Positions 21,539 to 58,733 of a stretch of DNA of 64,000 nt are shown in pieces (the stretch's first letter is position 1; the number at the start of each line of letters is the position of its first letter). Origin of the DNA: Ranitomeya imitator (Eukaryota); NCBI RefSeq assembly GCF_032444005.1, contig NC_091285.1, positions 240,932,001 through 240,996,000 of the forward strand, written 5' to 3'. The notes under the pieces are model-generated. The model made no database searches, had not been told where the DNA came from, and saw only the letters and a program-made list of their open reading frames with translations. A program made the position numbers and the translations under genes.

Positions 21539-21756
21539 TACTATGTGTCACCAAGGTGGTTGGCCTCAGTACTGTAAAATCTGTAAAGGTAACACTAGGA
21601 TATTGAGAGGGTTAATTTGTCTGGATTTTGGGTCCAGGATTTACGAACAATCAAACAAGTCTGAGTGGAAAAGTTTGCTCCCATAATCCTGCATGGAGTT
21701 TACAGGACTAAAAGCAGCAGTTGGGTTAGTTCAGCAGTGTGGACTAGTGTTGAGCG

Positions 21757-21880
21757 ATACCTTCCGATATCGGAAAGTATCGGTATCGGATAGGATCGGC
21801 CGATATTCAAAAAATATCGGATATCGCCGATACCGATACCCGATCCCAATGCAAGTCAATGGGACCAAAATATCGGAATT
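21757..21880. repeat. Left subterminal CCGATA/TATCGG cluster (putative transposase-binding sites)
   Basis: About ten CCGATA(C/T) or TATCGG hexamers in both orientations just inside the TIR. Confidence 0.75.
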
Positions 21881-22059
21881 AAAATAAACCCTTTCTTGCC
21901 TTGTAGGTTCATTCTACATGAAGGAAAACAACTAAGAATAATGCCGGATGTATTTGGGGAGGTGGCGGAGACATTAAAGTCATAGAGGTTTATCCCAATC
22001 AAATAGAATAGCATGTTTTTTTTTTTTTTTAAGACGTTCGGAGTGACAAAGATATTGAC

Positions 22060-22380
22060 TATGTAAATTTTTTTTTTATTTTGTCAGATATTGATGTTTC
22101 ACTATTCCACGCCCTTCCCCTTCTTTTTTTTCTTTTTTTTTTTTTTACTTTTCCCACACTTTCATCTTCATCATCATCATCAGCATCTTTGACATCAACT
22201 TCTTCTTCACCTTATTCATCTTCTTCTTCATCCTTTACCTTTTTTTTTTTTTTTGATTACATTCTTCATATTCATTTTATTCAACTATTATTATTCTTCC
22301 TATTCTACATATTCTTTTTATTCCACTGTTATTATTCTTCCTATTCTACTTCTTCATCATATTCTCATTTGTGACAGGCA
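22060..22380. repeat. Low-complexity poly-T, (TCT)n, (CAT)n and (TAT)n tract
   Basis: Directly visible triplet runs. Confidence 0.9.
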
Positions 22381-22639
22381 TTCCCTTAGTTGTTATCTAT
22401 AAAAGTTTGAAGATTACACCTTCCGTTCTGCCAGTCACAAAAGTTACATTTGTCCGCGTTCAGTTTGGCCTGCAGCATCAGGCTTTATCCAGGGGCACCA
22501 CGAGGAGGAACGGACTCACCCCCATACACTGCTTAGTCTTCTTCTGCATATAATTTAGATAATATATTTTGCTCTGATATTAAGTCTTATGCTTAATGTT
22601 CTTCTGCTCTTTGTTCTGCAGCCTCTTGTTCTTCTGCTT

Positions 22640-22830
22640 CTCGGTCTTCCATGTCGTCGTCTCCAGGGTCGTCGTCTCCAGTGTCGTCATCTCCGCCGTC
22701 GTCGTCTCAGCCGTCGTCGTCTCCGCCGTCGTCGTCTCCGCCGTCGTCGTCTCCGCCGTCGTCGTCGTCATCGGGGTGGTCTTCCGGGTCGTCGTCATCG
22801 GGGTGGTCTTCCGGGTCGTCGACTTTAGGG
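22640..22830. repeat. GTC-rich minisatellite (15-bp GTCGTCGTCTCCGCC-type units plus a 27-bp duplication)
   Basis: Directly visible; produces the TTTAE and SSSPP low-complexity ORFs. Confidence 0.9.
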
Positions 22831-22899
22831 TCTTCAACTTGGAAATGTAGCAGAAGGTACAAGAAGGCTGAGAAAATGCCAAGAACCAGCTGATGGAAC

Positions 22900-25800
22900 T
22901 GGAACTCGGATGGCTACCCGGAGGTTCAAGAGCCTATGGAACTACTGAGGACCAGCTGACGTTACTGGAACCCGGTTACTAAGCAGGAGGTACCCGTGCC
23001 TGAAAGCACTACCAAGGACCACCTGACGTTGGTGGAACTTGGATACCCAGAAGGAGGCACCTAAGCCAAAGGCTCTGCCCGGAACCAGCTGACGGTACTG
23101 GAACCAGGATGGGGAGCAGAAGGTACCAGAGCAAAAGACACTGCCGAGAACCAGCTGACGGTGCTGGAACCAGGTGGTGGACCTGAAGGCCCACAGGAGA
23201 GAAGAGAACAGCTAGGCCGCGAGGCAGCCGCAGTTACCGAACCCCAACAGTCCTACAGGGGGAGCTGGGCCTACTGGCACTACAGAACCAGCCTTGACTA
23301 CCAGTTCACGCAGCCCACATAGGAAGCTCCTAAACTGGAGGCACCCTGGAGTTGGCTAAACCGACCGCACCACGACGGGGCAAGCATAGGCGTCTCAGTG
23401 AACTTGACACAACCCGGAAACAGCTGACGGTGCTGAAACCAGGCTTGGCACGAGGGAGTACCTGTGACAAGAACACTGCCGAGAACCAGCTGGCGGTGCT
23501 GGAACCCAGATGCGTTGCCCCAGTGTGCAAGAGCCAATGGCACCGAGGACCAGCTGGCGGTGCTGGAACCCGGTTACTAAGCTGTAGGTGCCTGCGCTTA
23601 AGAGCACTACCAAGGACCACCTGGCGTTGGCGGAACTCGGATACCCAGGAGGAGGCACCTAAGCCAAAGGCTCGGCCTGGAACCAGCTGACGGTGCTGGA
23701 ACCAGGAGGTGGACCCGAAGGCCCACAGGAGAGGAGAGAACAGCTAGGCCGCGAGGCAGCCGCAGTTACCGAACCCCAACAGTCCTACAGGGGGAGCTGG
23801 GCCTACTGGCACTACAGAACCAGCCTTGACTACCAGTCCACGCAGCCCACATAGGAAGCTCCTAAACTGGAGGCACCCTGGAGTTGGCTAACCCGACAGC
23901 ACCACGACGGGGCAAGCATAGGCGTCTCAGTGAGCTTGACACAACCTGGAAACAGCTGACGGTGCTGAAACCAGGCTTGGCACGAGGGAGTACCTGTGTC
24001 AAAAACACTGCCGAGAACCAGCTGGCGTTGCTGGAACCCAGATGCGTTGCCCCAGTGTGCAAGACCCAATGGCACGACCGAGGACCAGCTGACGGTGCTG
24101 GAACCCGGTTACTAAGCTGTAGGTGCCCGCGCTTAAAAGCACTACCAAGGACCGCCTGACGTTGGCGGAACTCGGATACCCAGGAGGAGGCACTTAAGCC
24201 AAAGGCTCGGCCCGGAACCAGCTGACGGTGCTGGAACCAGGAGGTGGACCCGAAGGCCCACAGGAGAGGAGAGAACAGCTAGGCCGCGAGGCAGCCGCAG
24301 TTACCGAACCCCAACAGTCCTACAGGGGGAGCTGGGCCTACTGGCACTACAGAACCAGCCTTGACTACCAGTTCACGCAGCCCACATAGGAAGCTCCTAA
24401 ACTGGAGGCACCCTGGAGTTGGCTAACCCGACAGTACCACGACGGGGCAAGCATAGGCGTCTCAGTGAGCTTGACACAACCCGGAAACAGCTGACGGTGC
24501 TGAAACCAGGCTTGGCACAAGGGAGTACCTGTGTCAAAAACACTGCCGAGAACCAGCTGGCGTTGCTGGAACCCAGATGCGTTGCCCCAGTGTGCAAGAG
24601 CCAATGGCACGACCGAGGACCAGCTGACGGTGCTGGAACCTGGTTACTAAGCTGTAGGTGCCCGCGCTTAAAAGCACTACCAAGGACCGCCTGGCATTGG
24701 TGGAACTCGGATACCCAGGAGGAGGCACCTAAGCCAAAGGCTCGGCCTGGAACCAGCTGACGGTGCTGGAACCAGGAGGTGGACCCGAAGGCCCACAGGA
24801 GAGGAGAGAACAGCTAGGCCGCGAGGCAGCCGCAGTTACCGAACCCCAACAGTCCTACAGGGGGAGCTGGGCCTACTGGCACTACAGAACCAGCCTTGAC
24901 TACCAGTTCACGCAGCCCACATAGGAAGCTCCTAAACTGGAGGCACCCTGGAGTTGGCTAACCCGACCGCACCACGACGGGGCAAGCATAGGCGTCTCAG
25001 TGAACTTGACACAACCCGGAAACAGCTGACGGTGCTGAAACCAGGCTTGGCACGAGGGAGTACCTGTGACAAGAACACTGCCGAGAACCAGCTGGCGGTG
25101 CTGGAACCCAGATGCGTTGCCCCAGTGTGCAAAAGCCAATGGCACCTAGGACCAGCTGGCGGTGCTGGAACCCGGTTACTAAGCTGTAGGTGCCCGCGCT
25201 TAAAAGCACTACCAAGGACCGCCTGGCGTTGGCGGAACTCGCATACCCAGGAGGAGGCACCTAAGCCAAAGGCTCGGCCTGGAACCAGCTGACGGTGCTG
25301 GAACCAGGAGGTGGACCCGAAGGCCCACAGGAGAGGAGAGAACAGCTAGGCCGCGAGGCAGCCGCAGTTACCGAACCCCAACAGTCCTACAGGGGGAGCT
25401 GGGCCTACTGGCACTACAGAACCAGCCTTGACTACCAGTTCACGCAGCCCACATAGGAAGCTCCTAAACTGGAGGCACCCTGGAGTTGGCTAACCCGACA
25501 GCACCACGACGGGGCAAGCATAGGCGTCTCAGTGAGCTTGACACAACCCGGAAACAGCTGACGGTGCTGAAACCAGGCTTGGCACGAGGGAGTACCTGTG
25601 ACAAGAACACTGCCGAGAACCAGCTGGCGGTGCTGGAACCCAGATGCGTTGCCCCAGTGTGCAAGAGCCAATGGCACGACCGAGGACCAGCTGACGGTGC
25701 TGGAACCCGGTTACTAAGCTGTAGGTGCCCGCGCTTAAAAGCACTACCAAGGACCGCCTGACGTTGGCGGAACTCGGATACCCAGGAGGAGGCACCTAAG

Positions 25801-26200
25801 CCAAAGGCTCGGCCCGGAACCAGCTGACAGTGCTGGAACCAGGTGGTGGACCCGAAGGTCCACAGGAGAGGAGAGAACAGCTAGGCCGCGAGGCAGCCGC
25901 AGTTACCGAACCCCAACAGTCCTACAGGGGGAGCTGGGCCTACTGGCACTACAGAACCAGCCTTGACTACCAGTTCACGCAGCCCACATAGGAAGCTCCT
26001 AAACTGGAGGCACCTTGGAGTTGGCTAACCCGACTGCAACACGACGGGGCAAGCATAGGCGTCTCAGCGAGTTTGACACAACCCGGAAACAGCTGACGGT
26101 GCTGAAACCAGGTTTGGCACGAGGGAGTACCTGTGACAAAAACACTGCCGAGAACCAGCTGGCGGTGCTGGAACCCGGATGCTTTGCCTATCAAACATTG
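22900..26200. repeat. 532/535-bp tandem satellite, about six units
   Basis: Anchor CCTACAGGGGGAGCTGGG at 23252, 23784, 24319, 24854, 25386 and 25921. Units contain CCAGCTGACGGTGCTGGAACC subrepeats. Confidence 0.95.
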
Positions 26201-29200
26201 TCTTCCTACAGCCCCAACTAGCGGTGTTGGAGCAAAGGGTAAGCAGGGGGAGCAGAGTGTAGGCCGAAGCCTGCACTGGAGTCAGCTTTGTGTCTGCGTT
26301 GCGTTTGCAGGACACTTTGCCGGCTACACAGTGGGGGAACAGCAGGCGGTGCTGAACCCCACTAACACATTGGCTGGTGTTTTTCTCTGTGCAGCTAGCA
26401 CTTCCGGGCAAAAACTAGCGTTGTTACAGCCCAGGATCAGCAGGAGGAGGAGAGGAGCAGAGTGTAGGCCGAAGCCTAGTTGAACCAATTTCAAAGGTAA
26501 CCTTTAACCTCCCCTCAGGTGTTACAAAGTACAAGAGCCACACCTTGTGCAGCATTAATGCTGCACAAGAAAAGGTTGCTCTATTAATTTGTCTACTTGC
26601 ACACGCTGAATGCAACACGTACACAATTTAGCCCATTCTACAGTCAAACTGTAGTTGAGGCGTGACTTGTATTTTTAAGGAGACGCAGCATAGGTGTCCC
26701 AAATAACGCCTTTGTGCTAGGCGCTGCTTCCTGAGCGTTGTTTTTTGCTGTACAGGAGTCTGCGCTCTTGTGTTATCCCTTGGCAATGCCCTGTTAGCGC
26801 TGCCCGTCTTATGACCTCATTTCATGTTGGCCGCTGCGGTTAACGATGGCCATAAATCCCAGACCCACACTGCCTTTTCATAAAGTCACACTGCGGTGCT
26901 GGGATTCGTGGCCTTGTGCAGTAAATATTTTCGACGCTCACACACGTCCTTACACCTGCTTCAGACTGGGCGGCCTCTGCTGATCCCTTTTCGCATGCCG
27001 CGGCCAGGAGGCCGCACAGTCTGAAGAAGGCGGAAGGAGATGAGTGACGACAGGCGAACATATGCACTGCTCGTGCCCATAAACCACACCCTCGCTGACA
27101 AAATAAATCAGACAACGAGGGGCGTTGTTTCACGCAGGGCGGATGCACAGGCGCAGCCAGCTAACCATGATGTCAAAAGACGGGAAGCGCTACCAAGGGG
27201 GGTGCTGCGTATCATTAGAAAGGAAAGTCACACCTCAGGGACAGTGGAATGGTCTCAATGAGACACATTTTGTACGTGTTGAGTTCCACGTGGGCAAGGA
27301 GAAAAAGTCAGCCACCTTGTACAAATGCAGCAGTACTGCTGAACAAGGTGGCTGTTATACATAGAAACACCTGGGGGTGGGGGGCAGGCTCCCTTCAATT
27401 TCAGTTCATGTGCCTGCATGGCGTTTGCAGGTCACGTTGCCGGCTACACAGCTGGGGAACAGCTGGCGGTGCTGAACCCCATTAACACATTGGCTGGTGT
27501 TTTTCTCTGTGCAGCTCGCATGTCCGGGCAAAAACTAGCGGTGTTTAAGCCCAGGGTCAGCAGGAGGAGGAGAGGAGCAGAGTGTAGGCCGAAGCCTAGT
27601 TGAACCAATTACAAAGGTAACCTTTAACCCCCCCTCAGGTGTTGCAAGGTACAAGAGCCACACCTCATGCAGCATTAATGCTGCACAAGTAAAAGGTTGC
27701 TCTCTTAATTTTTCTCCTTGCACACGCTGAATAAAACACGTACACTATTTAGCCTATTATACTGTCAAACAGTAGTGGAAGCGTGACTTGTCTTTTTAAG
27801 GAGATGCAGCACAGGTGTCAAAATTAACACCTAGGTGCTGGGCGCAGATTCCTGAGCGTTGTTATTTGCTGTACAGGAATCTGCGCTCTTGTTATCCCTT
27901 GGCCATGCGCTGTGAGCGATGCCTGTCTTCTCACCTCATTTCATGTTGGCCGGTGCGGTTAGCGATGGCCATGAAACCCAGACCCGCAGTGTCTTTTAAT
28001 AAAGTCACACTGCAGAGCTGGGATTCGTGACCTTGTGCAGTAAATTTTGTCGCCTGTCCCTCATGTCCTTACACCTGCATCAGACTGGGCGGCCTCATCT
28101 GATCCCTTCTCGCATGCCGCGGCCATGAGGCCGCACATTCTGAAGAAGGCGGAAGGAGATGACTAAAGACAGGCGAATATATCCACTGCTCGTGCCCATC
28201 AATCACACCCTCGTAGTCAAAATAAGTAAGACAACGAGGAGCGTGGTTTCAGGCAGGGCGGACGCACAGCCGCAGCCAGCCAACCAAAGATGTCAGAAGA
28301 CGGGCAGCGCTAACAAGGGGGGTGCTGCGTGTCATTAAAAAGGAAAGTCACACCTCAGGGACATTGTAATGGTCTGTAATGAGACACATTGTTTACGTGT
28401 TTAATTAAACGTGGGCAAGTAGACAAAGTCAGCCACCTTGTACAAATGCAGCAGTACTGCTGTACAAGGTGGCTGTTATACATAGAAACACCTTGGGGTG
28501 GGTGGCAGGGTCCCTTTAATTTCAGTTCATGTGCCTGCGTGGCGTTTGCAGGTCACGTTGCCGGCTACACAGCTGGGGAACAGCTGGCGGTGCTGAACCC
28601 CACTAACACATTGGCTGGTGTTTTTCTCTGTGCAGCTAGCACTTCCGGGCAAAAACTAGCGGTGTTTAAGCCCAGGGTCAGCAGGAGGAGGAGAGGAGCA
28701 GAGTGTAGGCCGAAGCCTAGTTGAACGAATTTCAAAGGTAACCTTTAACCCCCCTCAGGTGTTGCAAGGTACAAGAGCCACACCTCGTGCAGCATTAATG
28801 CTGCACAAGTAAAAGGTTGCTCTCTTAATTTTTCTCCTTGCACACGCTGAATAAAACACGTACACTACTCAGCCCATTCTACTGTAAAACAGTAGTGGAG
28901 GCGTGACTTGTCTTTTTAAAGAAAAGCAGCCCAGGTGTCGAAAATAACACCTTGGTGCATGGGCTCAGCTTCCTGAGCGTTGTTATTTGCTGTACAGGAG
29001 TCTGCGCTCTTGTTATCCCTTGGCCATGCGCTGTGAGCGCTTCCTGTCTTCTGACCTCATTTCATGTCGGCCGTAGCGATGGAAATGAATCCCAGACTCA
29101 CAGTGTGTTTTCAAAAAATCACACTGCGTGGCTGGGATTCGTGGCCTTGTGCAGTAAATATGTTTGCCGCTCACACATGTCCTTACACCTGCTTCAGACT

Positions 29201-30246
29201 GGGCGGCCTCATCTGATCCCTTATCGCATGCCGCGGCCATGAGGCCGCATAGTCTGAAGAAGGCGGAAGGAGATGAGTTAAGACAGGCGAACATATGCAC
29301 TGCACATGCCCATCAATAACACCCTCGCAGCCAAAATATATGAGACAACGAGGGGTGTTGTGAATTCTGTGGCTGAATTCACTCCTGTGGTCACAAGTGG
29401 TACTGCAGCTTCTGAGCTTCCTCCCTCAGGTGTTCTGGTGAGCTCGTTAACTGCTTCATTACTTAACTCCGCCTGATGCTGCTATCCTTGCTCCTTGTCA
29501 ATGTTTCAGTGTTGGATCTGAGCTTCTCCTGATTGTTCCTGTGACCTGCTGCTCTGTATAGCTAAGTGCTTTTTGCTTTTTTGTTGCTTTTTTTCTGTCC
29601 AGCTTGTCTTTTGTTTTGCTGGAAGCTCTGAGACGCAAAGGGTGTACCGCCGTGCCGTTAGTTCGGCACGGTGGTTTTTTTGTGCCCCCTTTGCGTGGTT
29701 TTGCTTTAGGGTTTTTTGTAGACTGCAAAGTTCGCTTTACTGTCCTCGCTCTGTCCTAGAATATCGGGCCCCACTTTGCTGAATCTATTTCATCCCTACG
29801 TTTTGTCTTTTCATCTTACTCACAGTCATTATATGTGGGGGGCTGCCTTTTCCTTTGGGGAATTTCTCTGGGGCAAGTCAGGCCTATTTTTCTATCTTCA
29901 GGCTAGCTAGTTTCTTAGGCTGTGCCGAGTTGCCTAGGTAGTTGTTAGGCGCAATCCACAGCCGCTTTTAGTTGTGTTTAGGATAGGATCAGGTGTGCAG
30001 TCTACAGAGTTTCCACGTCTCAGAGCTCGTTCTTGTATTTTTGGGTATTTGTCAGATCACTGTGTGCGCTCTGATCGCTATGCACACTGTGTTTCTGGAT
30101 TGCCTTCATAACACCTGTCATTAGCAAACATAACAGTACAAGGAGCCAAACTAATGATTCTCAATAGAGGGAAAGAAAAAGTTCTGACATCATTTTTTTT
30201 TTTTTCTGCTCTGTGTTCACTTTTTTTTTTTCCCCTAGACATTTAG

Positions 30247-31395
30247 GTGATTCTGGACACAGGTGTGGACATGGATATTCAGGGTCTGTGCTCTTCAATG
30301 GATAATCTCGTTATAAATGTACAAAAAATTCAAGATACTATTGATCAGAAATCTATGTTAGAACCAAGAATTCCTATTCCTGATTTGTTTTTTGGAGATA
30401 GAACTAAGTTTCTAAGTTTCAAAAATAATTGTAAGCTATTTCTGGCCTTGAAACCTCATTCTTCTGGTAATCCTATTCAACAGGTTTTGATTATTATTTC
30501 TTTTTTGCGCGGCGACCCTCAAGACTGGGCATTTTCTCTTGCGCCAGGAGACCCTGCATTGAGTAGTGTCGATGCGTTTTTCCTGGCGCTCGGATTGCTG
30601 TACGATGAGCCTAATTCAGTGGATCAGGCTGAGAAAAATTTGCTGGCTTTGTGCCAGGGTCAGGATGATATAGAAGTATATTGTCAGAAATTTAGGAAAT
30701 GGTCAGTACTCACTCAGTGGAATGAATCTGCGCTGGCAGCTTTGTTCAGAAAGGGTCTCTCTGAGGCTCTTAAGGATGTCATGGTGGGATTTCCTATGCC
30801 TGCTGGTTTGAATGAGTCTTTGTCTTTGGCCATTCAGATCGGTCGACGCTTGCGCGAGCGTAAATATGTGCACCATTTGGCGGTACTGCCTGAGGTTAAA
30901 CCTGAGCCTATGCAGTGCGATAGGACTATGACTAGAGTTGAACGGCAGGAATACAGACGTCTGAATGGTCTGTGTTTCTACTGTGGTGATTCCACTCATG
31001 CTATTTCTGATTGTCCTAAGAGCACTAAGCGGTCCGCTAGGTCTGCCGTCATTGGTACTGTACAGTCCAAATTCCTTCTGTCCATTACCTTGATATGCTC
31101 TTTGTCGTCGTTTTCTGTCATGGCGTTTGTGGATTCGGGCGCTGCCCTGAATCTGATGGATTTGGATTATGCTAAACGTTGTGGGTTTTTCTTGGAGCCT
31201 TTGCGGTGTCCTGTTCCATTGAGAGGAATTGATGCTACACCTTTGGCCAAGAATAAACCTCAATACTGGGCCCAGCTGACCATGTGCATGGCTCCTGCAC
31301 ATCAGGAAGTTATTCACTTTCTGGTGTTGCATAATCTGCATGATGTGGTCGTGTTGGGGATCTGGTTTGGTTATCTTCTCGTCATATTCCTATGA
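30247..31395 (+). CDS. Ty3/Gypsy Gag-protease (382 aa), ending just past a deletion junction
   Basis: Retrotransposon gag (PDLFFGDRTKF..F), LCFYCGDSTHAISDC knuckle and FVDSGA protease. Confidence 0.9.
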   Translation: MILDTGVDMDIQGLCSSMDNLVINVQKIQDTIDQKSMLEPRIPIPDLFFGDRTKFLSFKNNCKLFLALKPHSSGNPIQQVLIIISFLRGDPQDWAFSLAPGDPALSSVDAFFLALGLLYDEPNSVDQAEKNLLALCQGQDDIEVYCQKFRKWSVLTQWNESALAALFRKGLSEALKDVMVGFPMPAGLNESLSLAIQIGRRLRERKYVHHLAVLPEVKPEPMQCDRTMTRVERQEYRRLNGLCFYCGDSTHAISDCPKSTKRSARSAVIGTVQSKFLLSITLICSLSSFSVMAFVDSGAALNLMDLDYAKRCGFFLEPLRCPVPLRGIDATPLAKNKPQYWAQLTMCMAPAHQEVIHFLVLHNLHDVVVLGIWFGYLLVIFL

Positions 31396-34875: not shown

Positions 34876-37800
34876 ATGTCCTTACACCTGCTTCAGACTG
34901 GGCGGCCTCAGCTGATCCCTTATTGCCTGCCACGGCCATGAGGCCGCACAGTCTGAAGAAGGCGGAAGGAGGGGAGTGAAGACAGGCGAACATATGCACT
35001 GCTCGTGCCCATCAATCACACCCTCGCAGTCAAAATATATGAGACAACGAGGGGCGTTGTGTCGGGCAGGGCGGACGCACAGGCACAGCGAGCCAACCAA
35101 TGATGTCTGAAGACGGGCAGCGCTAACAATGGGGGTGCTGCGTGTCATTAAAAAGGAAAGTCACACCTCAGGGACATTGTAATGGTCTCTAATGAGACAC
35201 ATTTTGTACGTGTTGACTTCCACGTGGGCAAGGAGAAAAAGTCAGCCACCTTGTACAAATGCAGCAGTACTGCTGTACAAGGTGGCTGTTATACATAGAA
35301 ACACCTGGGGGTGGGGGGCAGGGTCACTTCAATTTCAGTTCATGTGCCTGCGTGGCGTTTGCAGGACACGTTGCCAGCTACACAGCAGGGGAACAGCTGG
35401 CGTTGCTGAACCCCACTGACACATTGGCTGGTGTTTTTCTCTGTGCAGCTCGCATGTCCGGGCAAAAACTGGCGGTGTTCGAGCCCAGGGTCAGCAGGAG
35501 GAGGAGAGGAGCAAAGTGTAGGCCGAAGCCTGCACTGGTGGCAGCTTTTGGTCAGTTGTGCCAGCGTGGCTTGTGCTGGACACGATGCAGGCTACACAGC
35601 AGGGGAACAGCTGGCGGTGCTGAACCCCACTAACACATTGGCGGGTGTTTTTCTCTGTGCAGCTAGCAATTCCGGGCAAAAACTAGCATTTTTAGAGCCC
35701 AGGGTCAGCAGGAGGAGGAGAGGAGCAGAGTGTAGGCCGAAGCCTGCACTGGTGGCAGCTTTAGATCAGTTGTGCCAGCGTGGCTTGTGCTGGACACGAT
35801 GCCGGCTACACAGCAGGGGAACAGCTGGCGGTGCTGAACCCCACTAACACATTGGCGGGTGTTTTTCTCTGTGCACCTAGCACTTCCAGGCTACAACTGG
35901 CGGTGTTATAGCCCAGGGTCAGCAGGAGGAGGAGAGGAGCAGAGTGTAGGCCGAAGCCTAGTTGAACCAATTTCAAAGGTAACCTTTAACCCCCCCTCAG
36001 GTGTTGCAAGGTACAAGAGCCACACCTTGTGCATCATTAATGCTGCACAAGTAAAAGGTTGCTCTTTTAATTTTGCTCCTTGCACATGCTGAATAAAACA
36101 CGTACACTATTTAGCCCATTCTACTGTAGAACAGTAGTGGAGGCGTGACTTGTCTTTTTAAAGAAAAGCAGCACAGGTGTCGAAAATAACACCTTGGTGC
36201 ATGGGCGCAGCTTCCTGAGCATTGCTATTTGCTGTACAGGAGTCTGCGCTCTTGTTATCCCTTGGCCATGCGCTGTGAGCGCTTCCTGTCTTCTGACCTC
36301 ATTTCATGTTGCGTTGCGGTTAGCGATGGACATGAATCCCAGACCCACAGTGTGTTTTCTAAAAATCACACTGCGTGGCTGGGATTCGTGGCCTTGTGCA
36401 GTAAATATGTTTGCCGCTCACACATGTCCTTACACCTGCTTCAGACTGGGCGGCCTCATCTGATCCCTTATCGCATGCCGCGGTCATGAGGCCACCCAGT
36501 CTGAAGAAGGCGGAAGGAGATGAGTGAACACAGGCAAACATATGCACTGCACATGCCCATCAATCACATCCTCGTTGTCCAAAAAAATAAGACACAGAGG
36601 GGCGTTGTTTCGAGCAGGGCAGATGCACAGGCGCAGCCAGCTAACCAATGATGTCAAAACACGGGCAGCGCTAACAAGGATGGTGCTGCGTATCATTAGA
36701 AAGGAAAGTCACACCTCAGGGACAGTGGAATGGTCTCAATGAGACACATTTAGTACGTGTTTAATGAAACGTGGGCAAGGAGAAAAAGTCAGCCACCTTA
36801 TACAAATGCAGCAGTACTGCTGTACAAGGTGGCTGTTATACATAGAAACACCTGGGGGTGGGGGGCAGGCTTCCTTCAATTTCAGTTCATGTGCCTGCGT
36901 GGCGTTTGCAGGACACGTTGCCAGCTACACAGCAGGGTAACAGCTGGCGTTGCTGAACCCCACTGACACATTGACTGGTGTTTTTCTCTGTGCAGCTCGC
37001 ATGTCCGGGCAAAAACTGGCGGTGTTCGAGCCCAGGGTCAGCAGGAGGAGGAGAGGAGCAAAGTGTAGGCCGAAGCCTGCACTGGTGGGAGCTTTTGGTC
37101 GGTTGTGCCAGCGTGGCTTGTGCTGGACACGATGCCGGCTACACAGCAGGGGAACAGCTGGCGGTGCTGAACCCCACTAACACATTGGCTGTTGTTTTTC
37201 TCTGTGAAGCTCGCATTTCCGGGCAAAAACTAGCGGTGTTAGAGCCCAGGGTCAGCAGGAGGAGGAGAGGAGCAGAGTGTAGGCCGAAGCCTAGTTGAAC
37301 CAATTTCAAAGGTAACCTTTAACCCCCCCTCAGGTGTTGCAAGGTAGAAGAGCCACACCTTGTGCAGCATTAATGCTGCACAAGTAAAAGGTTGCTCTAT
37401 TTAGTTTGCTCCTTGCACACGCTGAATAAAACACGTATACTATTTAGCCCATTAAACTGTCAAACAGTAGTGGAGGCGTGACTTGTCTTTTTAAGGAGAC
37501 GCAGCACAGGTGTCAAAATTTACACCTAGGTGGTGGGCGCAGATTCCTGAGTGTTGTATTAGCTGTACAGGAGTCTGCGCTATTGTGATCCCTTGGCCAT
37601 GCGCTCTGAGCGCTGCCTGTCTTCTCACCTCATTTCATGTTGGCCGTTGCGGTTAGCAATGGATATGAATCCCAGGCCCACAGTGTGTTTTCAAAAAATC
37701 ACACTGCGTGGCTGGGATTCGTGGCCTTGTGCAGTAAATATGTTTGCCGCTCACACATGTCCTTACACCTGCTTCAGACTGGGCGGCCTCAGCTGATCCC

Positions 37801-40800
37801 TTATCGCCTACCACGGCCAGGAGGCCGCACAGTCTGAAGAAGGCGGAAGGAGATGAGTTAAGACAGGCGAACATATGCACTGCACATGCCCATCAATCAC
37901 ACCCTCGCAGCCAAAATATATGAAACGAGGGGGGTTGTGTCGGGCAGGGCGGACGCACAGGCACAGGCAGCCAACCAATGATGTCAGAAGACGGACAGCG
38001 CTACCAAGGGGGGTGGTGCGTGTCATTAAAAAGTAAAGTCACACCTCAGGGACATTGTAATGGTCTGTAATGAGACACATATTTTACGTGTTTAATTAAA
38101 CGTGGGCAAGTAGACAAAGTCAGCCACCTTGTACAAATGCAGCAGTACTGCTGTACTAGGTGGCTGTTATACATAGAAAGACCTGGGGGGGTGGGGCCAG
38201 GTTCCCTTTAATTTCAGTTCATGTGCCTGCCTGGCCTTTGCAGGTCACGTTGCCGGCTACACAGCAGGGGAACAGCTGGCGGTGCTGAACCCCACTAACA
38301 CATTGGCTGGTGTTTTTCTCTGTGCAGCTAGCACTTCCGGGCAAAAACTAGCGGTGTTTGAGCCCAGGGTCAGCAGGAGGAGGAGAGGAGCAGAGTCTAG
38401 GCCGAAGCCTGCACTGGTGGCAGCTTTTGTTCTGTTGTGCCAGCGTGGCTTGTGCTGGACACGTTGCCGACTACACAGCAGGGGAACAGCTGGCGGTGCT
38501 GAACCCCACTGACACATCACCTAGTGTTTTTTCTGTGTAGACAACACTTCCAGGTGGCAACTGACAGTGTTGAAACCCAGGGAATCAAAGAGGAGCAGAG
38601 TGTAGGCCGAAGCCTGCAGTGGAGCAAGTTGAAAGGGAACCTTTAACCCCCCCCCCCAGGCATTTGTTGCTGAAAGAGCCATCTTGTACAGCAGTAATAC
38701 TGCACATGGAAAATGGTGGTTTCGAAAATTATGCTCCTTGCAAACGCTGAAGTACACACTCATATAATGTGTCCCCTCACACCGTCAAACCATCCCGGAA
38801 GTGGGACTTTCCTTTGTAATGTGACACAGCACAGCCGTCATTCCAACCCCCTTGGTGCCGGGCGCCACCTCCTCAACGTTGTTTGGTTCTGTCACGGAGC
38901 CCGCGCTGTAATGTTATCCCTTGGCCATGCACAGTTAGCGGTGCCCGTCTTCTGACATCATGTAGGTGTCAGGCTGGCAGTGCCTGTGCGTCCAAGCTGC
39001 CCGAGATCCAACCTTGCAGTGTAATCTAATGTAGTCCCACTGCGGGCCAGGGATCCATGGGCATGCGCAGTGCATATCATCGCCTCTCACTCACCTCCTT
39101 CCTGCTTCTTCAGACTGTGCGGCGTCACGGCCGTGGCATGCTATTAGGGATCAGCTGACGCCGCCTAGTCTGAAGAAGCGTGAAGAAGGGGAGTGAGAGG
39201 CTAGTATATGCACTGCGCATGGCCATGGATACCAGGCCCACTGTGGGATCACATTAGACGACACTGCGAGGTGTGATTTTGGGCAGAGTGGACGCACAGG
39301 CGCAGCCAGGACGACAACAAATGATGTCAGAGGACGGGCAGCGCAAACTGTGCATGGCCAAGGGATAACATAACAGCGCAGGGTCCATGACGGAATCAAA
39401 CAACTCTAAGGAGGCAGCGCACGGTGCCAAGGAGGTAGCAATGACGGCTGTGCTGCGTCACATTACAAAGGAAAGTCCCACCTCCGGGACGGTTGGACGG
39501 TGTGAGGGGACACATTACATGAGTGTGTAGTTCAGCGTTTGCAAGGAGCATAATTTCAAGAGCGACCTTTCCCTTGTGCAGTATTAGTGCTGCACATGGT
39601 GGCTCTTTCAGTAACAAACGCCTAGGGGGGGGACAGGTCCCCTTACATTTTAGTTGTGCCAGCGTGGCGGTCGCATGACACGTTGCCGGATACACAGCTG
39701 GGGATCAGCTGACGTTACTGAACCCCAATAACAGAGGAGCGACTGTTGACTGTGCACACAGCACTTCCAGGCACCAACTGGCGGTGTTGGAGCCCAGGGA
39801 CAGCAGGAGGAGCAGATTGGAGGTATTGCCGCACACACAGCTGGGGATCAGCTGACGTTACTGAACCCCAATAACAGAGGAGCGACTGTTGACTGTGCAC
39901 ACAGCACTTCCAGGCACCAACTGGCGGTGTTAGAGCCCAGGGACAGCAGGAGGAGCAGATTGGAGGTATTGCCGCACACACAGCTGGGGATCAGCTGACG
40001 TTACTGAACCCCAATAACAGAGGAGCGACTGTTGACTGTGCACACAGCACTTCCAGGCACCAACTGGCGGTGTTAGAGCCCAGGGACAGCAGGAGGAGCA
40101 GAGGAACAGAGTGTAGGCCGAAGCCTGATTGGAGCAAGTTGAAAGGGAACCTTTAACCCCCCCCCCAAGACGTTTGTAGCTGAAAGAGCCATCTTGTGCA
40201 GCACTAAGGATGCAAAAGGAAAAGGTGGTTCTTTTAATTATGCTCCTTGCAAACACCGAAGTAAACACTAAAAATGTCCCGGAGGTGCGAATTTCCTTCG
40301 TAATGGGACACAGCACAGCTGTCATTCCTATCCCCTTGGTGCCGTGCGCTGCCTCCTCAGCGTTGTTTTAAGCTGTCACGGAGCCTGCGCTGTTCTGTTA
40401 GCCCTTGGCCATGCCCAATTAGCGCTGCCTGTCTTCTGACATAATTTGGTGTCAGGCTGTCAGTGCCTGTGCGTCCACGCTGCTCCAGATCCCACCTCGC
40501 AGTCTCGTCTAACGTAATCCCACTGCGGGCCTTGGAACCATGGGCATGCACAGTGCATATCCTCGACTCTCACTCCCCTCCTTCCCTCTTCTTCAGACTG
40601 TGCGGTGTCACGGCCGTGGCATGCTATTAGGGATCAGCTGACGGCGCACAGTCTAAAGAAGGCGGAGGGAAATGAGCGAGACCCCGAGGGGAAGATATGC
40701 ACTGCGCATGCCCATGGATCCCAGGCCCACAGTGTGACTCAATCAGAAGACACTGCGAGGCGGGATCTCGGGCAGCGCGGCCGCACAGGCGCAGCCAGCC

Positions 40801-41352
40801 TGACACCAAATTATGTCAGAAGACAGGCAGCGCAAATAGGGCATGCCCAAGGGATAACAGAACAGCGCAGGCTCCGTGACAGCTTAAAACAACGCTGAGG
40901 AGGCAGCGCATGGCACCAAGGGGGTAGGAATGACGGCTGTGCTGCGTCACATTACGAAGGAAAGTCCCAGCTCCGGGACAGTATAACGGTATCAGTGACC
41001 ACATTTTATAAGTGTTAAGTTCTGCGTGTGCAAGGAGCTAAAAAAAAAGAGCTACCTTTTCCTTGTGCAGCATTACTGCTGCACAAGATGGCTCTTTCAG
41101 TAACAAACGACGGGGGGGGGACAGGTTCCCTTACATTTAGGTTGTTGTGCCAGCGTGGCGGTCACAGGACACATTGCCGGCTACACAGCTGGGGATCAGC
41201 TGACGTTACTGAAACCCAATAACACTGGGTCGTATGTTTTTACTGTGCAGCCTGCACTTCTGAGCCGCAACTGGCGGTGTTGGAGCCCAGGAATAGCAGT
41301 TCAGGTGGTAGAAAGATGAACACAGCAGGAGACCTGGATGACACCCAATTAC

Positions 41353-44300
41353 TTAATCAGGCAGAGGAGTGGCAAATTCCTGCGAGATCCAGGCCTGGTT
41401 CATTTTCAGGAAAGTAAGCCGGTCAATGTTATCGGAGGATAGTCGCATGCGACGGTCTGTTAGTACACCACCTGCGGCACTAAAGACACGTTCCGATAAG
41501 ACACTAGCCGCAGGGCAAGCCAGCACCTCCAATGCATACTGGCTTAGCTCTGGCCATGTATCCAGCTTAGAGACCCAAAACTTGAACGGGGAAGAGCCGT
41601 CTGGGAGTACAGTAAGAGGGCATGCCATGTAGTCTGTCACCATCTGACGGAACCGTTGCCTCCTGCTGACTGGAGCCGCCGGTGATGGTGTAGACATTTG
41701 GGGCGGGCACACAAAAGTGTGCCAGAGTTGTGCCATACTGGGCTTGCCTTGGGCAGAGGCACTGCTTCTGCACCCTCTTTGGGCAGAGCCTCCCCCACTG
41801 CCTCGACGCACTGAGCTGCTTTGTAAAGCACTAGCAGCACTCCTCTCAGTTGGACAGGAGAAGATGATGGAATTCACCAGTGTGTCGTGGTACTCCCGCA
41901 ATTTACGCTCCCGGGTCAACACAGGGATGAGGTTCTGGACGTTGTCCCGGTAGCGAGGATCGAGGAGGGTGAACACCCAATAATCAGGCATGTTGAGAAT
42001 GTGGTCGATGCGGCGGTTGTTTCTCAGGCACTGCAGCGTGAAATCCACCATGTGCTGCAGAGTGCCAACTGGCCCAGAAACGCTGTCCCCTGCTTGAGAC
42101 ATGATCTCTGCCCGCTCGTCATCACCCCACCCTCGCTGTACACACTGACCACTGGACAATTGTGTCGCTCCCTCCTCTGGACGGAGCTCTTCCTCCTCCA
42201 TTGACTCCTCCTCATCCTCCTCACAAATTGGCCCCTGCGTACCCCTTTGTGAGGAACCACGTGGTGCTGACTCTCCAGAAGCTGATGGAAAAGGTGACTC
42301 CTCATCCTCCACCTCTTCCACAACATCATCCCTTAACCCTTGCAAAGTTTGCTGAAGCAGGCAGATAAGGGGGACAGTCATGCTGACTAGTGCATCATCT
42401 GCACTTGCCATCCGCGTGGAATAATCAAAAGGACGCAAAACCTGGCAGACGTCCTTCATAGTGGCCCACTCTATGGTTGTGAAGTCTGATCGGCGCTGAC
42501 TGCGACTTCTTTGCGTCTGATGCAGCTGGTACTCCATAACTGCTTGCTGCTGCTCACACAACCGCTCCAACATATGTAACGTGGAATTCCACCGGGTAGG
42601 TAGGTCACATATGATGCGGTGTTCCGGAAGGCGGAATCGGCGCTGCGGAGCAGCAATGCGGGATCTGGCCAAGCTGGAACGCCGCAAGTGAGCACACTCT
42701 AGGCGGACCTTGTGCAGCAGGGCATCAAGATCCGGATAGTCCCTCAGAAAACTCTGCACAACCAAATTGAGCACATGTGCCAGACATGGGATGTGAGTGA
42801 GGTTGCCAAGGGCCAAAGCTGCCACCAGATTTCGGCCATTGTCACACACTACCATGCCTGGCTGGAGATTCGCTGGCAGTAACCACACATCGCTCTCCTG
42901 CTTGATGGCATTCCAGAGCTCCTGCGCTGTGTGGCTTCGATGCCCCAATGAAACTAGTTTCAAGACGGCCTGCTGACGTTTGGCCACGGCTGTGCTCATG
43001 TCGGTCATAGGTAAACGTTCACGGGTCCATGTGGAGGTGGACTGTGACGGATCCTGCAGAGAGGAATCTGAGGAACTGGTGTAAGAGGAGGAGTCGATGC
43101 GTACAGACTGGATTCCTGCAATCCTTGGAGTGGGCAGGACACGTCCTGCGCCACTCGCACGATCTGTACCTGGCTCAACAACATTAACCCAATGGGCAGT
43201 GAGGGAAACATATCGCCCCTGTCCATGCTGACTGGTCCACGCATCGGTGGTGAGGTGGACCTTGCTACTGACGGCGTTCAGTAGCGCATGTTTTATGTTT
43301 GCCTCAACATGCCTGTGCAGGGCAGGGACAGCCTGCCTGCTGAAGTAAAAGCGGCTGGGCACCTTGTACTGTGGGACTGCCAATGCCATCAAGTCACGGA
43401 AGCTGTCAGTCTCCACCAGCCTGAACGAGAGCATTTCCAGGGACAAAAGTTTGGCAATACCTGCATTCAGAGCCTGTGCTCGGGGGTGGTTGGCCGAGAA
43501 TGCCCGCCTTTTCTCCCATGCCTGTACTACCGATGGCTGTAGAGTAGACTGGGAGTGTGAGGATGACTGGGAAGGTGGTGCTGTGGGTGGAATTACACAA
43601 GGTCTATGGACAACAGTGCCAGAGGTTCTTCCATGGCGATCCTGGGAGGAAGCCAAACCAGCTGTGCGTGAGCTGGAGGAAGAGGCAACACGAGCTGAAG
43701 AGGTGGTAGCTGCCACTGTTGGTTGGCCTACATCTTCAGTCTGTTTCTGTAACTCCACCGCGTGCCTGGTCCGCACATGTTTCCACATATTTGTGGTATT
43801 GAGGTTGCTGACATTTTTCCCTCTTTTTACTTTCTGATGACACAGCTTGCATTTGACAAAACAAATGTCATCTGCAACTGTGTCAAAAAAGGACCAGGCA
43901 CTGCAAGTCTTGGGAGCGCCCTTTTTGGCTTTGGAAAGAGACAGGCTCCTAACGGGTGCCAAAGTGGAGGCTACAGGCTCCGCAGTCTTCCCCCTCCCTC
44001 TCCCTCTTTGGCCCGTAAGGGTAAGCTCTTCCTCAGAGCTGCTCCCACCACCTTCCTGTTCCTCACGCCACGATGGGTCAAGGACCTCATCATCTCCACT
44101 ACCCTCTGCCACCAACTGCTCCTCCTGGGTAGTCTCGGCAGCACAGTACGCATCAGAAAGCGGCACCTGAGTTTCATCATCAGATGCGTACTGCGCTGTG
44201 GTCGCCGGAGGCACTGGCCCACCTGCCTCTTCAGAGTCAGAGAGAAAAAGCTGTTGGGCATCACTGCACACTGCCTCTTCTTCCATTTCTCCAATGCTGC

Positions 44301-44697
44301 TTGGCTGGCCCCCTGTTTTCAAGCCAAGAGATTCAGAGAACAGAAGTAGAGACGGCTCCTGTCCTGGGCTCTCTGACTGCCTGGCCAATTTGGCAGGTGG
44401 TGAAGAGACAGATGGCTGCTCTCCAGTGCTCTGTGCCTGAGAGGATGTGGCACTAACTGAAGTCGATGCCGAGGCGTTAGCTGCCATCCACCCGACAACG
44501 GCTTCAATTTGGTCTTCACGCAGCAGCGGTGCACGGCGCTCTCCGACAAAGCTGCGCATGAAGGACTGTTCCCTGCTGAAACTGAGTGACGACGAGTCAC
44601 CGGCGCCTGCAGCAGGCACAGAATCACCACGTCCTCTCCCTGCTCCTCTCCCTGCTCCGCGCCCACGCCCACGTGCCTTACTCCCTGCCCTCTTCAT
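41353..44697 (-). CDS. hAT transposase with BED zinc finger (1114 aa, intact)
   Basis: BED finger AWSFF..KCKLC..NTTNMWKHVRTRH; VHLTTDAWTS (D), VVCDNGRNL (D), PCLAHVLNL (CxxH), DLPTRWNST and CPAASVLSERVFSAAG (E, dimerisation domain). No stops. Confidence 0.96.
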   Translation of the reverse strand: MKRAGSKARGRGRGAGRGAGRGRGDSVPAAGAGDSSSLSFSREQSFMRSFVGERRAPLLREDQIEAVVGWMAANASASTSVSATSSQAQSTGEQPSVSSPPAKLARQSESPGQEPSLLLFSESLGLKTGGQPSSIGEMEEEAVCSDAQQLFLSDSEEAGGPVPPATTAQYASDDETQVPLSDAYCAAETTQEEQLVAEGSGDDEVLDPSWREEQEGGGSSSEEELTLTGQRGRGRGKTAEPVASTLAPVRSLSLSKAKKGAPKTCSAWSFFDTVADDICFVKCKLCHQKVKRGKNVSNLNTTNMWKHVRTRHAVELQKQTEDVGQPTVAATTSSARVASSSSSRTAGLASSQDRHGRTSGTVVHRPCVIPPTAPPSQSSSHSQSTLQPSVVQAWEKRRAFSANHPRAQALNAGIAKLLSLEMLSFRLVETDSFRDLMALAVPQYKVPSRFYFSRQAVPALHRHVEANIKHALLNAVSSKVHLTTDAWTSQHGQGRYVSLTAHWVNVVEPGTDRASGAGRVLPTPRIAGIQSVRIDSSSYTSSSDSSLQDPSQSTSTWTRERLPMTDMSTAVAKRQQAVLKLVSLGHRSHTAQELWNAIKQESDVWLLPANLQPGMVVCDNGRNLVAALALGNLTHIPCLAHVLNLVVQSFLRDYPDLDALLHKVRLECAHLRRSSLARSRIAAPQRRFRLPEHRIICDLPTRWNSTLHMLERLCEQQQAVMEYQLHQTQRSRSQRRSDFTTIEWATMKDVCQVLRPFDYSTRMASADDALVSMTVPLICLLQQTLQGLRDDVVEEVEDEESPFPSASGESAPRGSSQRGTQGPICEEDEEESMEEEELRPEEGATQLSSGQCVQRGWGDDERAEIMSQAGDSVSGPVGTLQHMVDFTLQCLRNNRRIDHILNMPDYWVFTLLDPRYRDNVQNLIPVLTRERKLREYHDTLVNSIIFSCPTERSAASALQSSSVRRGSGGGSAQRGCRSSASAQGKPSMAQLWHTFVCPPQMSTPSPAAPVSRRQRFRQMVTDYMACPLTVLPDGSSPFKFWVSKLDTWPELSQYALEVLACPAASVLSERVFSAAGGVLTDRRMRLSSDNIDRLTFLKMNQAWISQEFATPLPD

Positions 44698-44910
44698 CTT
44701 GGTTGACAGATAAAGATAAGCAGAAAAGTACTAAGGCCTTAGTGTGCTTATTCCTGAAATGCTCCTCCTAACAGGTGTAAGAAACACTAATGTTGTAAAG
44801 TGTGGACTAAACTTTAATATTTTTCAAATGTGGCCTACACAAGTGTTAAGTTGTGTTTGGTGAACTTTATTTTTTTTTTGTGCAGATCGGGCTACAGAGC
44901 TAGTTTAAAT

Positions 44911-45860
44911 CACACGGAGACCGTGCAGACAGCCGTAAATGGCGCTGCAAGGCCAAAAAACCCTCCTCTAGGTTATCCTATGTAGTGTTTTTCCACTATT
45001 TAGCTGGAGACGGGTGGAAAAACACTAATAGGGAATTTTTTTTTAAATTTTTAAACAGGCTGCACTATTTGAAAAAAAGGAAATTTTTTCTCAAGGTATG
45101 AGGCAGTAACGAACCCTGAGCTGAATCCAACCGGCTATGGCTGCACACAGACTACAGGGCGAGCTGGGCTCACACGGAGACCGTGCAGACAGCCGTAAAC
45201 GGCGCTGCAAGGCCCAATAAACCCCCTCTAGGTTATCCTATGTAGTGTTTTTCCACTATTTAGCTGGAGACGGGTGGAAAAACACTAATATGGAATTTTT
45301 TTTTAAATTTTTAAACAGGCTGCACTATTTGAAAAAAAGTAAAATTTTTCTCAAGGTATGAGGCAGTAACGAACCCTGAGCTGAATCCAACCGGCTATGG
45401 CTGCACACAGACTACAGGGCGAGCTGGGCTCACATGGAGACCGTGCAGACAGCCGTAAACGGCGCTGCAAGGCCCAAAAAAAACCCTCTAGGTTATCCTA
45501 TGTAGTGTTTTTCCACAATTTAGCTGGAGACGGGTGGAAAAACACTAATAGGGAATTTTTTTTTTAAATTTTTATACAGGCTGCACTATTTGAAAGAAAG
45601 GAAAATTTTTCTCAAGGTATGAGCCAGTAACGAACCCTGAGCTGAATCCAACCGGCTATGGCTGCACACAGACTACAGGGCGAGCTGGGCTCACACGGAG
45701 ACCGTGCAGACAGCCGTAAACGGCGCTGCAAGGCCCAAAAACCCCCCTCTAGGTTATCCTATGTAGTGTTTTTCCACAATTTAGCTGGAGACGGGTGGAA
45801 AAACACTAATAGGAAATTTGAGAAAAAATGTGCAGCAGGCTGCACAATGAGCAAAAAAGG
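44911..45860. repeat. 260-bp tandem repeat, about 3.6 units, upstream of the transposase
   Basis: Anchor CACA(C/T)GGAGACCGTGCAGACAGCC at 44911, 45171, 45431 and 45692. Confidence 0.95.
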
Positions 45861-45939
45861 ACAACTGTGTGAGGCAGTGTGAACCCCCCCTGAGCTGAAT
45901 ACAACCGGGTATATGGCTGCACACAGACTACAGAGTGAG

Positions 45940-45942
<3 letters not shown>

Positions 45943-45970
<28 letters not shown>
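45943..45970. repeat. (CA)14 microsatellite
   Basis: Directly visible. Confidence 0.98.
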
Positions 45971-45973
<3 letters not shown>

Positions 45974-46149
45974 ACCTTGCAGAACGCTGTTAAAACATCG
46001 CTGCAAGGCAAGAGCAAGGTGAACAGTGAAGAACACACAGCGTTTTGCTAAATTAGCCTTTGGAAAGGAAAATAAAGCAATTAGCTAGCTCAACTGGCCC
46101 TCAGTTAGAACACAGCGTCCTGTCCCTAACTGAAATCACAGCAGAGTGA

Positions 46150-46290
46150 GCGCAAAATGGCGGCAGCGTTTTTTATAGTGCAGAGTGACATCATTTCAGC
46201 AGCCAATCACAGCCTTGCCAGTACTTACATGCCCACCATGCTAAACAGGATGTGCCCACACTTCCAATCATTCCTCATTGGCTGCTGCGT
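46150..46290 (-). promoter_or_regulatory. Putative transposase promoter region
   Basis: YY1-type AAAATGGCGG at ~46153, AGCCAATCA at 46201, CATTGGCT at ~46276, local CpGs; lies between the right TIR and the ORF. Confidence 0.35.
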
Positions 46291-46312
46291 TCAGTTTGAA
46301 TTCTGGGAACTT

Positions 46313-46410
46313 CCGATTCCGGTATCCGATACGCGGGAAGTATCGGAATTCAGTATCGGAATTCCGATACCGCAAATATCGGCCGATACCCGATACTTGC
46401 GGTATCGGAA
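46313..46410. repeat. Right subterminal CCGATA/TATCGG cluster
   Basis: About eight CCGATA(C) or GTATCGG motifs mirroring the left-end cluster. Confidence 0.75.
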
Positions 46411-46748
46411 TGCTCAACACTAGTGTGGACTTGTCCTGGAGCTGAACAAAGGTGCATTTTTGTCTGCTGAACACAATTAAACTTCTGGAGCTGATATGGT
46501 CTGAAATATTTAGATTGGTGAGGCTGCTACATTTACCTTTTTCATTGTATTTGAAGATGGAACTATTTATGTTATTCAATTATACTGGAGAAAGGCTGTG
46601 TTAGTTTTAGAGCTGTAAAGTCTATGAAAGACAGTAAACTCTATGCTGTTTTGTACTCAACTTGGTATGTGCACTGTGTCAGAAGGTGTGTGCCCCTATT
46701 GCCTGAGCTGCCAACCTCTAATGGTTTTATTTTAGCAATCATGGGGGA

Positions 46749-47034
46749 TAGTGATGAGCGAGTATACTCGTTGCTCGTTTTTTCCCGAGCATGCTTGGGT
46801 GTCCTCCGAGTATTTTGGCATGCTCAGAGATTTCGTTTTTTCGACGCAGCTGCATGATTTGCGGCTGTTAAACAGCTTGAATACATGTGGGGATTCCCTA
46901 ACAGACAATCCCCACATGTATTTAATCTGTCTAATAGCCACAAATTATGCAGCTGCGTCAACAAAAATGAAATCTACTAGCACGCTAAAATACTCGTAGG
47001 ACACCAGAGCAAGAAGTATACTCACTCAACACTA
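46749..47034. mobile_element. 286-bp hAT-type palindromic MITE
   Basis: Ends TAGTGATGAGCG and CACTCAACACTA; perfect 8-bp TSD ATGGGGGA at 46741-46748 and 47035-47042; long internal inverted repeat. Confidence 0.9.
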
Positions 47035-58139: not shown

Positions 58140-58258
58140 ACCGGGAGATTTACTGTATGAGGAGCATTGGTAGACATCTTACTTTATATAGAGGCCTGTG
58201 GTGGAAATCACAATGTGTGTGTGTGTGGGGTGGTGGTCTGTGGAAAATGAGTGACAAC

Positions 58259-58636: not shown

Positions 58637-58733
58637 AAACCGCGCGCCGTAGGACATTATTGCAAGAGAGCTTGGCTGAGTAGATTACACAAGAAGGAAA
58701 ACACACAGCAAGTCAGCAGGATCTAGGAGCAAC

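Follow-up and report, generated by a model that had tools for sequence, protein, structure and literature searches.

Can a DNA transposon of the hAT superfamily carry tandem repeats several times the size of its own gene and still move in one piece? The question is raised by a locus of the poison frog Ranitomeya imitator (assembly GCF_032444005.1, contig NC_091285.1, positions 240,932,001 to 240,996,000 of the forward strand; this whole stretch of 64,000 nucleotides is hereafter the window), where a hAT element spans window positions 21745-46422, i.e., 24.7 kb, or ~20.5 kb once two nested insertions are subtracted. Autonomous hATs are typically ~3-5 kb long and contain little internal repeat. 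An initial annotation, made from the letters alone, had proposed that this giant element moved as one unit, and the proposal is supported by an exact empty site, the age of the arrays and the recovery of their junctions in two further coded organisms. We conclude, with a probability of roughly 0.85, that cut-and-paste transposition brought a hAT element of a high-copy dendrobatid-like family to this site as a single long unit of ~20.5 kb or more, possibly of the full 24.7 kb, and that the element carried its arrays beforehand. The mechanism of mobilisation (by its own transposase or by a transposase provided in trans), the way in which one of the arrays (array B) formed and the copy number of the family are what we infer within this reading.

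Ends, target site and transposase

The element is bounded by perfect terminal inverted repeats (TIRs) matching at 11 of 11 bp: TAGTGTTGAGC on the + strand at 21745-21755, which is the 3′ end relative to the transposase gene, and its reverse complement GCTCAACACTA on the − strand at 46412-46422. Each arm occurs just once within the window. Immediately outside them lie two identical copies of an 8-bp target site duplication (TSD), GTGTGGAC, at 21737-21744 and 46423-46430; the left junction reads ...CAGCA GTGTGGAC and then the element start TAGTGTTGAGCGATACC..., and the right junction runs from the element end ...GGAATGCTCAACACTA into GTGTGGAC TTGTCC.... By chance, an 11-bp TIR combined with an 8-bp direct flank would be expected ~0.007 times in the window. 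As judged by eye, the duplication matches nTnnnnAC, the established target consensus of hAT elements such as Hermes and hobo.

The hexamer TATCGG/CCGATA is present at 21 sites inside the element, 17 of which fall within ~130 bp of the ends: nine in the first ~130 bp, eight in the last ~100 bp and four across the 24 kb between. These end clusters are putative transposase-binding sites, comparable to the subterminal repeats of other hATs. On the left, the 3′ subterminal region (21756-22870, − strand) continues after its nine motifs in low-complexity T-rich and GTC-rich runs, the whole tail from 21745 to 22870 amounting to 1.1 kb; on the right, the 5′ subterminal region with its eight motifs (45943-46411, − strand) forms, together with the TIR, an end region of 480 bp (45943-46422). 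The matching TIRs, mirrored CCGATA clusters and perfect 8-bp TSD described in the initial annotation were all recovered at these positions.

Logan contigs of four public runs were aligned to window positions 41001-47000 and then to 21201-27200; runs X1 and X2 represent one sample, of coded organism A, and runs X25-27 represent coded organism H. Contigs from many other copies of the family stop or diverge exactly at 46422 and have differing flanks (run X8, with loose ends in X3 and X5), and the 3′ subterminal region is covered at ~99% identity by contigs of coded organisms B and C.

The only long frame of the element is a stop-free open reading frame (ORF) of 1114 amino acids on the − strand (41353-44697), with a 212-bp leader (44698-44909, − strand) between its start codon and array C (see below). 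Following a long low-complexity N-terminus, Pfam searches identified a BED finger (zf-BED, PF02892, residues 267-312, E 3.8e-08) and, near the C-terminus, the hAT dimerisation domain (Dimer_Tnp_hAT, PF05699, residues 1034-1098, E 7.6e-14). The best solved-structure match is the Hermes transposase. The catalytic residues of Hermes are D180, D248 and E572, accompanied by the conserved W319. In the alignment, VVCDNGRN (D619) corresponds to the D248 block, IPCLAH to the C..H block and SERVFS (E1069) to SERTFS (E572), and PTRWNST (W703) is identical to the W319 block; the first catalytic aspartate, D485 (TTDAWTS), was placed by its invariance among homologues and not by direct alignment with Hermes. 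Across 11 anuran and reptile homologues, the invariant columns comprise the ligands of the BED finger (C283, C286, H307 and H312), the catalytic D485, D619 and E1069, and W487, C638, H641 and W703. The stop-free transposase called in the initial annotation is present, together with its BED and hAT dimerisation domains and all the catalytic landmarks. Every defining feature that could be tested is present, and the element is a genuine hAT-superfamily DNA transposon.

The nearest database protein, 87% identical, is a "ZBED6-like" entry of Ranitomeya variabilis, and the remaining close matches come from dendrobatid and other frogs under the automatic names ZBED4/ZBED6-like. Genes of that kind share with the ORF the BED finger, the RNase-H-like fold and the hAT dimerisation domain; however, they are single-copy, domesticated and devoid of TIRs and TSDs, whereas the ORF lies between TIRs flanked by a TSD, is a member of a family with very many copies and is missing at the empty site (see below). 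For these reasons, i.e., the TIRs and TSD, the many copies and the empty site, a domesticated ZBED gene was rejected as an identification. The ORF is also matched at ~99% identity by contigs from run X5, which is labelled as RNA; this is not evidence of transcription. Within the ORF, 36 bp at 43605-43642 (in frame, 12 codons) are skipped by contigs from the RNA-labelled run and from each of organisms A, B and C, reflecting either an insertion in this copy or a deletion common to those family members.

The label "autonomous" is a prediction drawn solely from the open frame and the conserved catalytic residues. The long element could have moved whole as a passenger, i.e., with its own transposase dead or weak and that of a sibling doing the cutting, which would make it functionally non-autonomous; we rate this as a serious contender at somewhat less than even odds. 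Relative to the majority letter of the family in organism A, the ORF has 18 private differences in 3345 bp (0.54%), of which 12 are non-synonymous, including L684P, and six synonymous, a near-neutral ratio, with several CpG transitions among them. Moreover, the summed ORF depth of the family in run X1, an assembler word depth rather than a copy number, is very high (~6 × 10^5, vs. ~10 for the single-copy flank contig), and a transposase acting in trans would be plentiful if any copy is active. Speaking against a mere passenger, the frame is open over 1114 codons, all homologue-invariant residues are kept, D485, D619, E1069 and W703 among them, and none of the private changes falls on an invariant column.

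The empty and the filled site

The insertion of a long unit is most directly documented by the unoccupied form of the site. Run X1 contains a 492-bp contig (depth 10.4) whose letters 1-233 correspond to window positions 21513-21745 and whose letters 220-469 correspond to 46418-46667. Its letters 225-232 are a single GTGTGGAC that matches both TSD copies of the window, and the contig passes from the left flank through this one TSD into the right flank with nothing gained or lost. The same contig was recovered from run X2 (493 bp, depth 8.3). The joined form must exist in the reads themselves because a graph of 31-letter words cannot bridge an 8-bp shared repeat. This is the empty-site form, CAGCAGTGTGGACTTGTCC, which the initial annotation had predicted; no short element that could have preceded later growth of the arrays is present in it, and indeed the empty site holds no element at all. 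A composite of two elements flanking a satellite was also considered and rejected, based on the identical TSD and the exact empty site.

Between the window and the empty-site contig, the flanks differ at ~2-4 of 470 bases (<1%), including 21664 and 46620. The contig could conceivably be a paralogous duplicate of the flank, neither an allele nor an orthologue, and the DNA left of ~21500 and right of ~46750 is repetitive and of high depth. We consider this improbable: in runs X1 and X2, positions 21664 and 46620 are each covered by no contig other than the empty-site one, whose depth of ~8-10 is at the single-copy level, and even a paralogue would display an unoccupied target with one copy of the TSD.

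The filled left junction was searched with a 60-base query centred on it. One of the two sampled words was recovered, and only in X25-27; X1 and X2 lack it. Four study codes are common to organisms A and H, which are probably congeners. Thus, the site is filled in the lineage of the window and unfilled in a very close relative or population. The excision of hAT elements normally leaves a footprint, and the precise, footprint-free empty site has the look of a target that was never occupied.

Interior arrays and their age

Three sets of tandem repeats, each with its monomers arranged head-to-tail, were delineated within the element. Array A (22871-26188), identified by self-comparison, starts with a diverged half unit followed by ~5.8 monomers of 532-535 bp with a GC content of 60%; the mean pairwise identity of its monomers is 96.5% (range 93.6-98.9%), the most alike pairs reaching 98.7-98.9%. 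Array B (26216-38410), likewise from self-comparison, consists of ~7 monomers of ~1.12 kb with a mean pairwise identity of 90.7% (range 88.7-93.4%). It is followed by ~3 kb of diverged B-like units (38436-41352), which are 71-81% alike to the B monomer, partly inverted, contain a 143-bp subrepeat at 39683-40102 and adjoin the stop codon of the ORF. Array C (44910-45942), on the upstream side of the ORF, has ~4 monomers of 260 bp. Downstream of the ORF, tandem DNA (22871-26188 and 26216-41300) totals ~14.3 kb net of insertions, close to the ~15 kb that had been estimated initially. Tandem arrays thus occupy over half of the element. The accompanying notion of a satellite cargo stands insofar as the arrays are several times the size of the gene; however, the cargo is not one satellite but at least three unrelated repeat families, the third of which (C) lies upstream of the ORF.

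Each B monomer begins with a 189(+25)-bp subrepeat, present one to three times, and continues into an imperfect palindrome of ~900 bp, whose arms pair at monomer positions 219-340/980-1095, 375-404/914-943, 503-550/862-907 and 653-690/717-754. The palindrome ends on the right in ...GGGTCCCTTTAA and starts on the left with ACAAAGGTAACC, a decayed version in which the TTAA is eroded. TTAA followed by AGGRR at the ends is the signature of the frog T2-MITEs (miniature inverted-repeat transposable elements), which are non-autonomous Kolobok elements (PMC6004289). By this likeness of its ends, the palindrome of the array-B unit appears to be a T2/Kolobok-like MITE. A solo hairpin element of ~100 bp with ends CCCTTTAA, related to the outer arms of the palindrome, lies outside the hAT element at 51202-51299; it is the sole match in the window to any part of the element beyond its boundaries.

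No Rfam family or tRNA was matched in the arrays and no ORF of at least 120 amino acids runs through array A or B; accordingly, the arrays were rejected as a gene cargo. They were also rejected as additional transposase-binding sites of the TATCGG/CCGATA type, a count of this motif over the whole element having placed none in arrays A, B or C.

Array B is interrupted by two nested insertions. The first (29356-32593, + strand, 3238 bp, TSD GAGGGG) is an internally deleted long terminal repeat (LTR) retroelement of the Ty3/gypsy chromovirus-like type, with 780-bp LTRs that have TG..CA ends and a single difference between them (99.87% alike), and with Pfam domains in which gag and zf-CCHC are joined to integrase SH3 and chromo. 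The second is an 890-bp insert (33986-34875) in which 46 bp of filler precede an 844-bp element bounded by TIRs of ~75 bp (TATACTAAACC...), and is flanked by a 15-bp direct duplication of the monomer, ATGTCCTTACACCTG. The filler and the 15-bp duplication make an odd junction for a TA-type element and could reflect break repair. Together, the two insertions measure 4.13 kb, in agreement with the ~4.15 kb initially proposed, and leave 20.5 kb.

The arrays predate the insertion because their monomers differ by 3.5-9% on average, compared with a private change of 0.54% in the ORF and a flank difference of <1%. Arrays that had grown after the insertion would be younger than it; instead, the divergence of the monomers is 7-20 times greater. 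The arrays are also a property of the family. Contigs of organisms B and C cross the boundaries between tail and array A, between arrays A and B, and between the ORF and the B units at ~95-99% identity. In runs X1, X3 and X8, the depth per 532-bp A monomer is ~3-7 times, that of the B subrepeat ~2.6-7.5 times and that of the B palindrome ~2-2.6 times the depth of the ORF, all as summed assembler word depths whose ratios are rough. With several monomers per ORF in three coded organisms, the arrays are evidently standard for the family, and these rough depths (per ORF equivalent, ~3-7 A monomers and no fewer than 2-3 B units) leave little room for large free-standing arrays. The ends, in turn, have only ~1-1.6 times the depth of the ORF, and short deletion derivatives therefore do not dominate, a scarcity that is unusual for hAT families. 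As a rough figure, the depths suggest at least 10^4 ORF equivalents at 90% identity or more.

An ordinary hAT of a few kb could alternatively have inserted at this site, its arrays expanding in place by unequal exchange or replication slippage. Tandem arrays do change in length: contigs of organism A often contain joints at which entire A monomers are left out or repeated (e.g., from 23126 to 24599 and from 23048 to 25724), from which it follows that array length differs between copies, and the likeness of the closest A pairs noted above also speaks for this scenario. However, expansion in place predicts near-identical young monomers, whereas those of array B differ by 7-11% and those of array A by 3.5% on average, set against the far smaller changes in this copy and its flanks. 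It is further contradicted by organisms B and C, which share these arrays and the junctions between segments, with several monomers per ORF, and by the fact that the only alternative form of the site seen is fully empty. We give this scenario very little weight. Equally slight is the chance that the length is an artefact of assembly, i.e., that arrays belonging to several copies were joined up or lengthened between genuine ends. In its favour, the family has very many copies and is rich in repeats, and the length of the interior is that of the assembly. On the other side, the B monomers are ~9% apart and individually distinguishable, the array is anchored by two unique nested insertions, each with a target duplication of its own, no N interrupts the window, and all segment junctions occur in independent contigs.

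Several points nonetheless weigh against insertion as one long unit, or limit what it entails. The filled form was seen in organism H and the empty form in organism A, which are coded differently; the empty site may accordingly be an orthologue and not an allele, and the age of the insertion could reach back to the split between these two organisms. When it jumped, the element may have differed in its exact length, and the length of the arrays given here is that of the assembly; the word depths cited above, moreover, are not copy numbers. The LTR element, with its nearly identical LTRs, and the closest A pairs could postdate the jump, and the same could hold for both nested insertions and for small changes in monomer number. 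Finally, the 12:6 pattern of private changes in the ORF looks close to neutral, and the element's own transposase may be impaired.

Elsewhere in the window, a Tc1/mariner element (6963-8499) has 217-bp TIRs that are 96.8% alike and a frameshifted transposase, with helix-turn-helix domains at 7597-8142 and DDE_3 at 7215-7676 in two overlapping minus-strand frames. Immediately to the left of the hAT site, where the DNA up to ~21500 is high-copy in the reads, two inverted repeats that are 85% alike (19895-20124 and 21318-21553, ~1.2 kb apart) probably mark another TIR element. A further inverted pair, 91% alike with a ~110-bp spacer (5669-5848 and 5961-6138), is hairpin- or MITE-like, and a 126-bp tandem repeat, 99% alike, lies at 58255-58641.

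Proposed mechanism, related elements and significance

In the orientation of the gene, the layout of the element runs from TIR and motif cluster through array C, the transposase gene, the diverged B units, array B, array A and the low-complexity tail to the second motif cluster and TIR. A palindromic Kolobok/T2-like MITE may have landed inside an ancestral hAT element and been tandemly amplified along with ~214 bp of neighbouring hAT sequence, giving rise to array B. A dimer or oligomer of the hAT transposase would then bind the TIRs and subterminal motifs, cut both ends and reinsert the element with an 8-bp staggered cut. If recognition is limited to the TIRs and subterminal motifs, all the DNA between them would travel along, and every transposition would seed a new 10-15-kb block of arrays elsewhere. 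Given the many siblings, we consider a transposase acting in trans as probable as self-mobilisation.

The element shares with autonomous hATs such as Hermes, Ac, hobo and Tol2 the TIRs starting with TAG/CAG, the 8-bp TSD on nTnnnnAn, the (here putative) subterminal binding repeats, and the combination of a BED finger, an RNase-H-like DDE domain with its W and a C-terminal dimerisation domain. It differs from typical members in its length of 24.7 kb, its ~14 kb of arrays of three families and its 1114-residue ORF. In mechanistic terms a length of 25 kb is unremarkable because engineered Tol2 moves a cargo of up to ~200 kb (PMC8151067). Both systems move more than 20 kb between their ends; however, the cargo of the Tol2 vectors is artificial, whereas here it is a natural load that a family passes on and that occurs in many copies. 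Another unusually large element that moves passenger DNA is ToxhAT, a 14-kb hAT-type element of wheat-pathogenic fungi (PMC12506042), but its cargo consists of genes, and it is fungal, low-copy and without satellite arrays.

Transposon-borne tandem repeats are known for non-autonomous Helitrons and Helentrons, MITEs and foldback elements (PMC9659126, PMC7492417, PMC4079207, PMC6004289). A parallel in a frog is provided by Xenopus Xmix/Xstir on a T2 (Kolobok-type) MITE (cited in PMC6004289), in which tandem repeats were likewise amplified in a DNA transposon and spread. Xmix is a small non-autonomous MITE with short units, whereas in the present case a MITE together with sequence of its host element would form a 1.1-kb unit within an ORF-bearing element of another superfamily. 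Helitrons or Helentrons with central tandem repeats (the oyster CgHINE, PMC7492417, and Drosophila DINE-TR1) and the foldback element Tetris (PMC4079207) have also seeded satellite-like arrays across genomes. However, these belong to other superfamilies, are non-autonomous and usually contain no more than ~10 short monomers, in contrast to the 10-15 kb found here beside a transposase gene. Giant satellite-carrying hATs are not described in the dendrobatid genome papers PMC11152451 and PMC6278860, and a literature search of partial coverage for giant hATs with satellites returned no description, which is weak evidence of novelty. What appears to be new is a natural and abundant hAT family that carries non-coding arrays several times the size of its gene and has still moved, with one array seemingly derived from a foreign MITE.

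In one dendrobatid genome, hATs were assigned ~4% of the assembly and unclassified repeats ~39% (PMC11152451). We suggest, as a tentative proposal that we think more apt to fail than to hold, that one family of 12-25-kb ORF-bearing hATs, in bulk a MITE-derived macrosatellite, occupies several percent or more of giant frog genomes, perhaps in at least 10^4 copies. If this were true, satellite-like arrays, along with much of the "unclassified repeat" fraction, would have spread in large part through cut-and-paste transposition, and no longer hAT element with natural mobility would be on record. Judging from the ratio of ends to ORF, which is close to 1:1, it seems to be the long copies, and not miniature derivatives, that succeed.

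Dispersed satellite-like arrays are usually credited to small non-autonomous elements, among them MITEs, Helitrons and foldback elements. In the present case, the exact empty site documents the arrival in one piece of a hAT that bears a transposase gene, is 5-8 times the usual size and has ~14 kb of arrays, as a natural counterpart to the large-cargo behaviour of engineered Tol2. The array-B unit would, moreover, offer a clear case of a Kolobok-type MITE made into a satellite inside another transposon. For these frogs, the family would thus provide a concrete source of dispersed macrosatellites and possibly a large, so far unlabelled, contributor to poison-frog genome gigantism.

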